Shown here in pieces: positions 408-3,400 of a stretch of DNA of 64,000 bases. Position numbers and translations under genes: made by a program. Position 1 is the stretch's first letter. Every line of letters begins with the position of its first letter. Source of the DNA: Bugula neritina (lineage: Eukaryota; Animalia; Bryozoa); the NCBI GenBank assembly GCA_964035545.1, contig OZ037766.1, forward strand, positions 17,633,081 through 17,697,080, given 5' to 3'. The notes beneath the pieces were generated by a model. That model did no database searches. It was given only the letters and a program-made list of their open reading frames with translations, and had not been told where the DNA came from.

Positions 408-3400
408 CTCAACTAGTAAATCCCTCTGCACTGCATCAGCTGCCCCAGCTGTGACAGCAGTAACTTGCACTCTCATGCTACCAAGAACAGTTGGTATGAT
501 AGGAAACGAAACGGTCGTCCCTTGATTTGCTTTGGCCTAAAAATCACAGCTATCCGATTTGAATATAGCAATTATTGTATATATTTACTGAGTTTAGCAA
601 GAATGTATTTTAATTACACTTATATGGACTATATATATAATGTTTGAAGATAAGCATTAAGGTAAAATATTTTAACAATATTATTATATATCTGCTGTCA
701 CGCGCATGCATTAGGATTACAAATAATTGTGGCAATTTAAAACTTTACTTCTTTTTTAAATCTGCTTTCTACATTATGTACAGTCTATAATTTTACGCTG
801 CTTGCATTCTTGTTAAAATTTTCAGCTGGTTCTACCTAATCAAATTTCATATAGGCAGGCATACATACTGTTCAAGCCTTACCTTTATAGTAACAGTGTC
901 TGTCTTTTTGACATTGGTTGTTGCACCAGAAGTGGAGACCAAGATAGACCTATACTCATCTGAAGCAGGTAGACTTACAGTAACATCAACATCTTTTGCC
1001 ATGTAATTAAATACTATTGCTTGGAGAACCAATTGTTCTCCTCTAACTACTGAGTAGGGAAGGTTGAGGGAAACAAAAAAGGGTTTGAATACCTGCATCT
1101 GAAATAAAAGATGAGTTCAATAGAGTCATCAATGCTATATACATGTGCAGCAACTAAAAGGAACAAATGATTAGCATAAATTGCTCTTTCTGAACGAATC
1201 AATAATTATTTATAAGCACTTTCTGAAAAAAATTCATGTGATATGACAACATATATTTCGTTTATGCAGCAATATTCTATGCAAGTCCAGTATTAAGAAG
1301 GCTTGATGCAGTGACTGCTGATATTTGAGAATATGTAATTTGTGAATCTTAGACTTGATCACCTATGCCACAAACTAAAATCATAAAATAGATTGGCTAC
1401 ATGAACTATAAACTCCATCTTGTGTAGAGGAAAAATAGTTTTGTAAATAAGTAATTATAGCAGCTTTAAACTTTGAAGTTTTTGATTGCATGATCTAAGG
1501 TCCATAGTCTTGATTTGTGCTGAAAGTGGTACATATTTACTTGTAGGTTATAATAGTTTATCTTATCAACAACTTGAATCAGTTAAAAGCTGTATTGAAA
1601 ATTTAGTTGCATATATTTATACCATGTGTCTAAGCTAGTAAAAATAGTCACCAAAGTAATATATGTTAAAGATACCAGTATGTCTTCTAAGCCATAAAAC
1701 AAATTGAATTTTATAACTTTGAAACTTTTACAATAACTTTTGAACAAATTGAACAACATTTTTATGCACATAGAAAAATAGAATGCTGGCACCTGATAAA
1801 ATATGTATTTCTATATTTCTACATTTCAGGTGAAGTGTTGGTCTTAGTAAATTTCTATAACATGAAAAATTGTACCTATGCATATTAAAAAGGAAGAAAT
1901 TTTTGTTTAAAACATCATTATACTTATGTTAATGTTTGTTTGTCTTAGCAAATAGTCATGTGGTTTTATCAACACTATAACAATGAAAAGGTTGCATACC
2001 TTTGCAGTTTCAGCAGAGACACCCAGGCCAGCATGAGATGACACAGCAAAAGCACTGGCCACCCAGGAAGTGATAGTGTCAGGTATTGTTGTAGTCACTA
2101 TTACTTTGCCATCACTATAACAAAAACAGCCATATTAAGTGACAGCTAGTGTATTTATTTAGATAAAAATATCACAAAAACAATAAGATATTTTTGTTAG
2201 AAGTTAACTCAATATATGTATTAAATTAAACAATTGTTATAATGTTAAAGGGATTATTTATTATTATGGCTTAGAAGACAGTTAAAATGACCATGCAGGC
2301 AAATAAAATACTTCAACTTTGCATATTCATTTATGTTTTAAATTGTATCTCTACTTGATCACATAAAACAGTTGTTGTAATAACTAGTACAGTCTTAAAA
2401 GAGTTTGTTAGCTAGCAAATCCAAGTGGTATAATTAGCACAATTCATCTGATCACTCACACAGAGGTCAGGTTTGACCACAACCAACTTTCTGGAAAAAC
2501 TTTTCGTACAGCCACTTCCTTAGTAGAAGCAGAAGATGCACTATTAGGTGCTGGTGCTACTGGGCCAATGCTATCAGCAACAGATGCAATTGCCATCTCA
2601 GGGACTGCAATTCCTGGCCTACCCCCACCAAATCCTCCTCTAGCCATCGCCATATTCCAAATTGGGGGATGAATGATTGGATGATCTGTAAGTAAAATGA
2701 CATTACTTACACAGAAGTCATGTTGGACCAGAGCCAGCTCTCAGGAAAAGCCTTTCTGACCACAACCTCTTCAACTGGTACAGTGTTACTATCAACAGTT
2801 GAAGGCATTACAGGCTTAGAGGCTATGCTTTTCCCAGGGAATACTGCAGCTGATTTTGCAATTGCTCCAGCACCAAAAGCTTGAATACCATTAAAAGCTC
2901 CATCCCATAATACTGGCCGACTTGGCATAATAATTCTTTCTGTAAGTGAAGAAGCAACTTGCATAATTAGCTAAATTATTTAGTATTTCACTACAACAGC
3001 TATGTTAGTAAGCATGCAGTGACTTATTTTCAAGCTATGCGAAAATATCCTGTAGCTTTGACAAGTTTTTTTCTTATTTACTACAAAGTCAATTTTATAA
3101 AAAAAAACTATATTAGCTTTCAAAGGCTTTTTTGATTTAGTTGCTTCTGAGTATATTATAATAAACGATAAAAATAACTGCTCCTTATATTTTAAATGTA
3201 TGCAATGTTGAGATTTGAACACCCCTTATCAGCAACAGTTTCCTATGTATCCAATCACTCAATTAAATAGAAATATAAATTCCACCAGAGTAAACATTTT
3301 TATAAAATACCTTCTCCCTTCATTTATATATTTATAATAACTTCACATATAGCATATTTAAGTTTCCATCTAACAACATAAGTATAATAAATACTGCAAC

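Follow-up and report, generated by a model that had tools for sequence, protein, structure and literature searches.

Several invertebrate thioester proteins (TEPs) vary their bait region through alternative exons. In the BgTEP2 gene of the snail Biomphalaria glabrata, 12 exons are mutually exclusive and share a conserved C-terminal part, and bait splicing is also described for BgA2M and BgCD109 (PMC7016707). The same source cites five bait-exon isoforms of Drosophila Tep2, six mutually exclusive exons of CfTEP from the scallop Chlamys farreri, with tissue-, sex- and pathogen-specific use or induction, and six variants of shrimp A2M (PMC7016707). The precedent named in the original prediction for the present locus, i.e., exclusive bait exons in Tep2 and a scallop TEP, agrees with these publications, in which BgTEP2 has exclusive bait exons with a conserved 3′ end and Tep2 and CfTEP are similar. 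A search of the open literature revealed no paper on a bryozoan case of bait-exon switching. Both the immune phenomenon and the splicing mechanism considered below are already published, and the local twist in the bryozoan Bugula neritina is an unusually short spacer between two such exons.

The window analysed here is the whole stretch of 64,000 nt of B. neritina DNA (GenBank assembly GCA_964035545.1, contig OZ037766.1, positions 17,633,081 to 17,697,080 of the forward strand). It includes a gene on the minus strand in which two tandem alternative exons, designated A and B, occupy the bait region. Its features are as follows, with coordinates counted from the first letter of the window.

1..15272, extending beyond the start of the window, minus strand: host gene, predicted from domain and motif matches to encode a secreted iTEP/CD109-group thioester protein
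3429..3594, minus strand: upstream constitutive exon (linker region, pre-bait), ending in phase 1; sequence and both ends present in RNA contigs
2711..2939, minus strand: alternative bait exon A, 229 nt, phase 1 to 2; sequence, and RNA joints 3429-2939 and 2711-2114 in three studies
2686..2710, minus strand: spacer, 25 nt, GT..AG; sequence, with no RNA depth over it
2460..2685, minus strand: alternative bait exon B, 226 nt (223 nt in the second allele), phase 1 to 2; sequence, and RNA joints 3429-2682 and 2460-2114
2000..2114, minus strand: downstream constitutive exon, beginning in phase 2; Pfam A2M positions 14-47 (E=1.4e-8), and RNA
883..1098, minus strand: next A2M-domain exon; sequence, and the loose RNA end at 2000 runs on into this exon

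The host gene starts near 15270, and PF07703, PF00207 and PF07678 (BRD, A2M and TED) are matched exon by exon, in order along it. The original placement of A and B in the bait region of an A2M/TEP protein holds, as the exon that follows them (2000..2114) matches Pfam A2M as well as human A2M and CD109 just past the bait region. An intact GCGEQ thioester motif of the same gene lies in the adjoining DNA (L010 9737-9456). The best PDB match of the TED is CD109 (E=4e-21), and its catalytic position is His, as in CD109, in contrast to Asn in human A2M. A thioester of the His type favours binding to surfaces in the manner of complement. Among named full-length relatives, the best matches are a CD109-like protein of a chiton and TEP proteins of snails or molluscs. 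Six Cys residues are found in the predicted last exons (L010), and the tail that closes the last ORF is short and polar, as in the chiton protein; the GPI signal or hydrophobic tail that characterizes CD109 proper is absent from the predicted last exon. A C-terminal six-cysteine signature marks secreted iTEPs (PMC5989330). Because of the GCGEQ motif, the CD109-like His, the six-cysteine end that lacks a hydrophobic tail, and the chiton and mollusc relatives, the host protein is predicted to be a secreted His-type iTEP of the iTEP/CD109 group, neither a classical A2M trap nor a GPI-anchored CD109. No annotated bryozoan orthologue carrying a species name was found, and an alignment of the window's exons with the chiton protein was of low quality and did not enter the analysis. 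Elsewhere in the window, the minus strand holds, upstream of the TEP gene, exons of a gene with a terminal SH3 domain (22880-21425), possibly a Tuba/DNMBP-like GEF. It also holds a 397-residue open frame (26622-25432), which has no Pfam match and by eye resembles the end of a Penelope-type retroelement. A GC-rich block at 34000-40000, with matches to reverse transcriptase, RNase H and integrase spread over more than one ORF, corresponds to an LTR retrotransposon with a gypsy-like domain order.

The two alternative exons are built on the same plan. Exon A encodes a variable Ala/Gly/Pro/Lys linker followed by the conserved R-K-x-F-P-E-S-W-L-W strand, and exon B encodes a variable Ala/Gly/Pro/Met/Ser linker followed by the conserved strand. 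At their 3′ ends, A and B agree in 14 of the final 17 residues and in 78% of the final 45 nt, far above chance, whereas the similarity between the bait halves is not above that of shuffles (p=0.11). The like 3′ ends and unrelated upstream halves noted in the original prediction were therefore confirmed, and its exon and spacer lengths (229/25/226 nt), spacer sequence, GT/AG sites and phases (1 to 2) are all correct on the minus strand. Pfam and PDB searches with exon A or exon B alone gave no real match. Because the upstream exon ends in phase 1 and the downstream exon starts in phase 2, the reading frame is kept by A alone or by B alone. Within the spacer lie the consensus donor of A, a stop (TAA) in the frame of A, and the pyrimidine tract and acceptor of B. 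The claim that inclusion of both exons or of neither breaks the frame proved right, every wrong form meeting an early stop: junction translation places it one codon past A when the spacer is retained, about 15 codons into B when A is joined to B, and after three codons when both are skipped. All searches were run exon by exon, and stops and intron ends were read from short translations across single junctions, not from a joined spliced model.

RNA contigs from three runs, each from a different study, form in every case a two-path bubble, 3429-A-2114 and 3429-B-2114, with canonical intron ends except at the acceptor of B; a further run (X19) yielded no contigs here. Of the junctions proposed for checking, 3429-2939, 2711-2114 and 2460-2114 are present in these contigs, 3429-2685 appears as 3429-2682, and 2711-2685 is absent. 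The acceptor is seen at 2682 instead of 2685 because the sequenced animals carry an allele that lacks one ATC. DNA contigs of a second haplotype have one ATC missing at the start of B, which leaves an exon of 223 nt in the same frame, and they share the substitutions of the RNA contigs; a non-canonical acceptor at 2682 was thus ruled out as a 3-nt allele. The possibility that A or B is a pseudo-exon was likewise ruled out by RNA contigs with both isoforms. No A-B joint, no 3429-2114 double skip and no depth over the spacer were found in the RNA contigs of the three studies, a form of data that drops rare forms. Both isoforms are substantial in RNA, the bubble depths (A:B) being 6.2:10.6, 10.2:37.2 and 76.3:105.1, where contig depth is a poor gauge of level. 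Each mRNA takes A or B, and this either-or splicing, which had been predicted and is seen as clean A/B bubbles in the contigs of all three studies, is almost certain.

The B. neritina gene accordingly shows the features of the Tep2/CfTEP/BgTEP2 type, i.e., tandem homologous bait exons with the same phases, a conserved 3′ part, and one exon per transcript, with each exon used. The likeness to CfTEP and Tep2 lies in alternative exons that diversify the bait region of an iTEP; the B. neritina gene has fewer exons, and tissue-, sex- and pathogen-specific use is a feature of CfTEP. With BgTEP2 it shares tandem mutually exclusive exons of the hypervariable region, a conserved C-terminal part and, by prediction, a secreted iTEP with a cysteine-rich end. 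The two differ in scale, since BgTEP2 spreads twelve exons over 30 kb, whereas the two exons of B. neritina lie 25 nt apart.

Exons 2 and 3 of alpha-tropomyosin are sterically enforced mutually exclusive exons with a distant branch point. A second example is OGDH 4a/4b, in which less than ~50 nt separate the donor of the first exon from the branch point of the second, and ~50 nt from donor to branch point has been given as the steric threshold (PMC7969005). The B. neritina pair resembles OGDH in this closeness, but OGDH has a distant branch point in a longer intron, whereas in B. neritina the whole intron is 25 nt, the signals must overlap, and the branch points are candidates only. Any branch point within the spacer would be less than 25 nt from the donor of A and hence below the ~50-nt criterion; the candidates for B, which are motif guesses, lie at -18 (on the donor of A) or -33 (within exon A). 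The signals of A and B would thus overlap, because a length of 25 nt puts the branch point of B on or beside the donor of A or inside A. Among 34 introns mapped in four TEP genes of the B. neritina genome, the shortest is 111 nt and the median 380 nt. Two 30-nt stretches of the C4 genes that had looked like introns proved to be read-through coding sequence and were not counted. Judging from the spacer length and the signal overlap, steric exclusion of the A-B joint is quite likely. The steric part of the proposed double lock is upheld insofar as 25 nt is far below both the shortest mapped intron and the ~50-nt threshold, but relatives and paralogues keep arrays that have no short spacer. Sterics leave possible a single 480-nt exon of A, spacer and B, which would use the acceptor of A and the donor of B and would be blocked only by the stop in the spacer; no such composite occurs in the RNA contigs.

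The second haplotype also bears on another possible means of choosing the exon, namely competing RNA helices of the docking-site/selector type. Here the first 13-16 nt of B would pair with an intron element at 3261-3249 or with the donor region of B, and the spacer would form a hairpin of 8-9 bp that links the donor of A to the acceptor of B. The two duplexes have energies of -18.4 and -16.2 kcal/mol, each matched by 1 of 500 shuffles against a fixed target, and the MFE fold and the centroid fold each contain the spacer hairpin. Once all exon windows are allowed, however, 56 of 60 shuffles do as well, and the fold of the region is no more stable than those of shuffles (z=-0.25). The second haplotype weakens all three helices with no compensation (-14.6 and -10.1 kcal/mol, and a hairpin mismatch), yet the RNA with correct either-or splicing comes from alleles of this type. 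RNA-structure control was therefore rejected, as the helices are neither conserved in the second haplotype nor significant family-wise, and this explanation is barely credible.

To place the spacer in the family, relatives and paralogues of the bait exons were compared. The orthologous or closely related genes of chiton and mussel have a single bait exon in phase 1 to 2 with the same conserved strand. In the gastropod Batillaria attramentaria (L050 1400-13200), at least 12 bait cassettes with long spacers are found, including a duplicated block of five, and another contig contains at least nine, also with long spacers. The public gene model of Batillaria attramentaria fuses two cassettes in one protein, which is probably an annotation error. 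Closer relatives were compared at 68-75% identity on the next exon. L064 has one bait exon with flanking introns of ~81 and ~71 nt. In L058, 621 nt separate two cassettes, and in the first of them (1-217), seen in one low-coverage contig, the Glu codon of the conserved strand is replaced by TAG, which marks either a pseudo-exon or an assembly error. Exon A matches only this first cassette, and exon B matches both. L061 and L063 have no neighbouring cassette close upstream, and nine contigs that end short of the bait region (L055-L057, L059, L060, L073, L077, L078 and L080) fall outside the comparison. Within the B. neritina genome, bait duplication occurs in three of four FPETW-type genes. The other genes compared are as follows.

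L011 6908-7121 and 7203-7399 (C4:4.535 Mb): A2M-like paralogue with two predicted bait cassettes, phase 1 to 2, and an 81-nt spacer; from sequence
L008 (C2:20131000-20140999), about 7000-3800 (C2:20.13 Mb), minus strand: TEP paralogue with five intact predicted cassettes and one decayed; from sequence
L012 about 7650-8093 (C4 about 4.553 Mb): second A2M-like gene, adjoining the C4:4.535 Mb gene, with a single collagen-like Gly-X-Y bait exon

The paralogues at C4:4.535 Mb and C2:20.13 Mb, known from sequence alone, share with A and B the exon unit, the donor position and phase 1 to 2, and differ in their longer spacers. In the C2 paralogue, the decayed cassette (5245-5190) has a stop in the conserved strand, the last two cassettes are a recent duplication with 92% identity, and one cassette is Lys-rich and others are acidic. 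Three more A2M-family genes, at C1:18.57-18.61 Mb and C4:22.55 Mb, have no FPETW-type cassette in the stretches read and are possibly MCR-like.

This comparison changes the standing of several predicted features. The FPESWLW strand, noted in the original prediction as part of the duplicated unit, is a family rule that also applies to the single-exon chiton and mussel genes. Early stops in the wrong forms support the frameshift lock, but the lock is not special to A and B; because the single bait exons of chiton and mussel are already in phase 1 to 2, it appears to have been inherited, together with the conserved strand, with the ancestral exon, and the duplication appears to recur. The proposed check of spacer length in orthologs went against conservation, as 25 nt is kept neither in L064 (one exon) nor in L058 (621 nt). 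Spacers range from 81 nt to ~1 kb in the paralogues of the B. neritina genome and from 81 nt to >1 kb in relatives and paralogues together, so the 25-nt spacer looks local, being found only in B. neritina among the genes compared. The same observations would suit an explanation in which exclusion is mainly post-splicing or follows a family-wide long-spacer mechanism (exon competition and decay of out-of-frame forms), with the 25-nt spacer as an incidental local shrinkage: phase 1 to 2 is already found in the single-exon genes of chiton and mussel, the arrays of at least 12 and at least nine cassettes have long spacers, and the spacer is 621 nt in a closer relative and 81 nt to ~1 kb in paralogues. 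This explanation is unlikely, given that a 25-nt intron falls below all mapped introns and the steric threshold, which makes an A-B joint physically improbable regardless. The spacer is also still 25 nt in the second haplotype, with one substitution, a weak test over so short a length.

The functional meaning of the two isoforms was considered through variation of the bait between haplotypes. The haplotypes are ~4% apart in introns, with some 15 indels nearby; around the exon pair, intron divergence is 3.6-4.8% and that of exons A and B 1.7-1.8%. In addition, ~560 nt of the intron 5460-4263 (window 4900-4340) are absent from the second haplotype, which represents an insertion polymorphism. The bait parts differ by 5 amino-acid and 2 silent changes plus a one-codon indel, in contrast to 6 amino-acid and 33 silent changes in the other ten exons and the conserved strands, corresponding to pN/pS values of 0.83 for the bait, a figure from 7 changes, and 0.056 for the rest of the gene (Fisher p=0.005). 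The bait is thus hypervariable as expected, and these few changes show relaxed constraint rather than positive selection, for which a bait pN/pS of 0.83 from 7 changes gives no support; a value near 0.8 fits relaxed constraint and adaptive diversification equally well. Such nearly neutral protein evolution and the one-codon indel between alleles would also be expected if the isoforms, though real, were near-equivalent linkers, or differed in another respect (glycosylation, stage or tissue), and the duplicate persisted because it is automatically harmless. The single exon of L064, the stop in the first L058 cassette and the decayed cassette of the C2 paralogue point in the same direction. Near-equivalence is nevertheless distinctly unlikely, as A and B are both intact with comparable contig depth in three studies, diverge less than their flanking introns, and belong to a genome with bait duplication in three of four FPETW-type genes. 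As the isoforms differ only in the protease-exposed linker, A2M/TEP biology suggests that the sets of proteases which cut and activate them probably differ, and the balance leans slightly toward a functional difference between A and B in protease sensitivity.

The preferred account combines bait-exon duplication, either-or use, overlapping splice signals, early stops in the wrong forms and a protease difference, and as a whole it is reasonably probable. A single ancestral bait exon, consisting of a variable linker and the FPExWLW strand in phase 1 to 2, would have been duplicated in tandem, and the linker halves would have diverged. The 25-nt spacer would be unspliceable, with the donor of A overlapping the branch point and pyrimidine tract of B, and U1 on A may compete with U2/U2AF on B for shared bases. 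Transcripts that include A and B together, skip both or retain the spacer contain the stops described above and would probably be cleared by nonsense-mediated decay. A stronger version, in which the spacer is a selected minimal binary switch where the U1 site of A and the U2/U2AF sites of B share bases, regulates the A:B ratio by stage or infection, and belongs to a set of bait duplications with different exclusion mechanisms that arose repeatedly in three TEP genes of the genome, is doubtful.

The locus adds a bryozoan to the animals in which thioester proteins switch bait exons. Across lophotrochozoans, the same exon unit and phase pair are reused, in genes with a single bait exon and on up to arrays of a dozen cassettes. 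Since its phases are asymmetric, any duplicate of this exon is exclusive at the protein level as soon as it arises, and this may be the reason for the recurrence of such duplications in the family. The 25-nt spacer of B. neritina provides a compact natural test case for steric exclusion.
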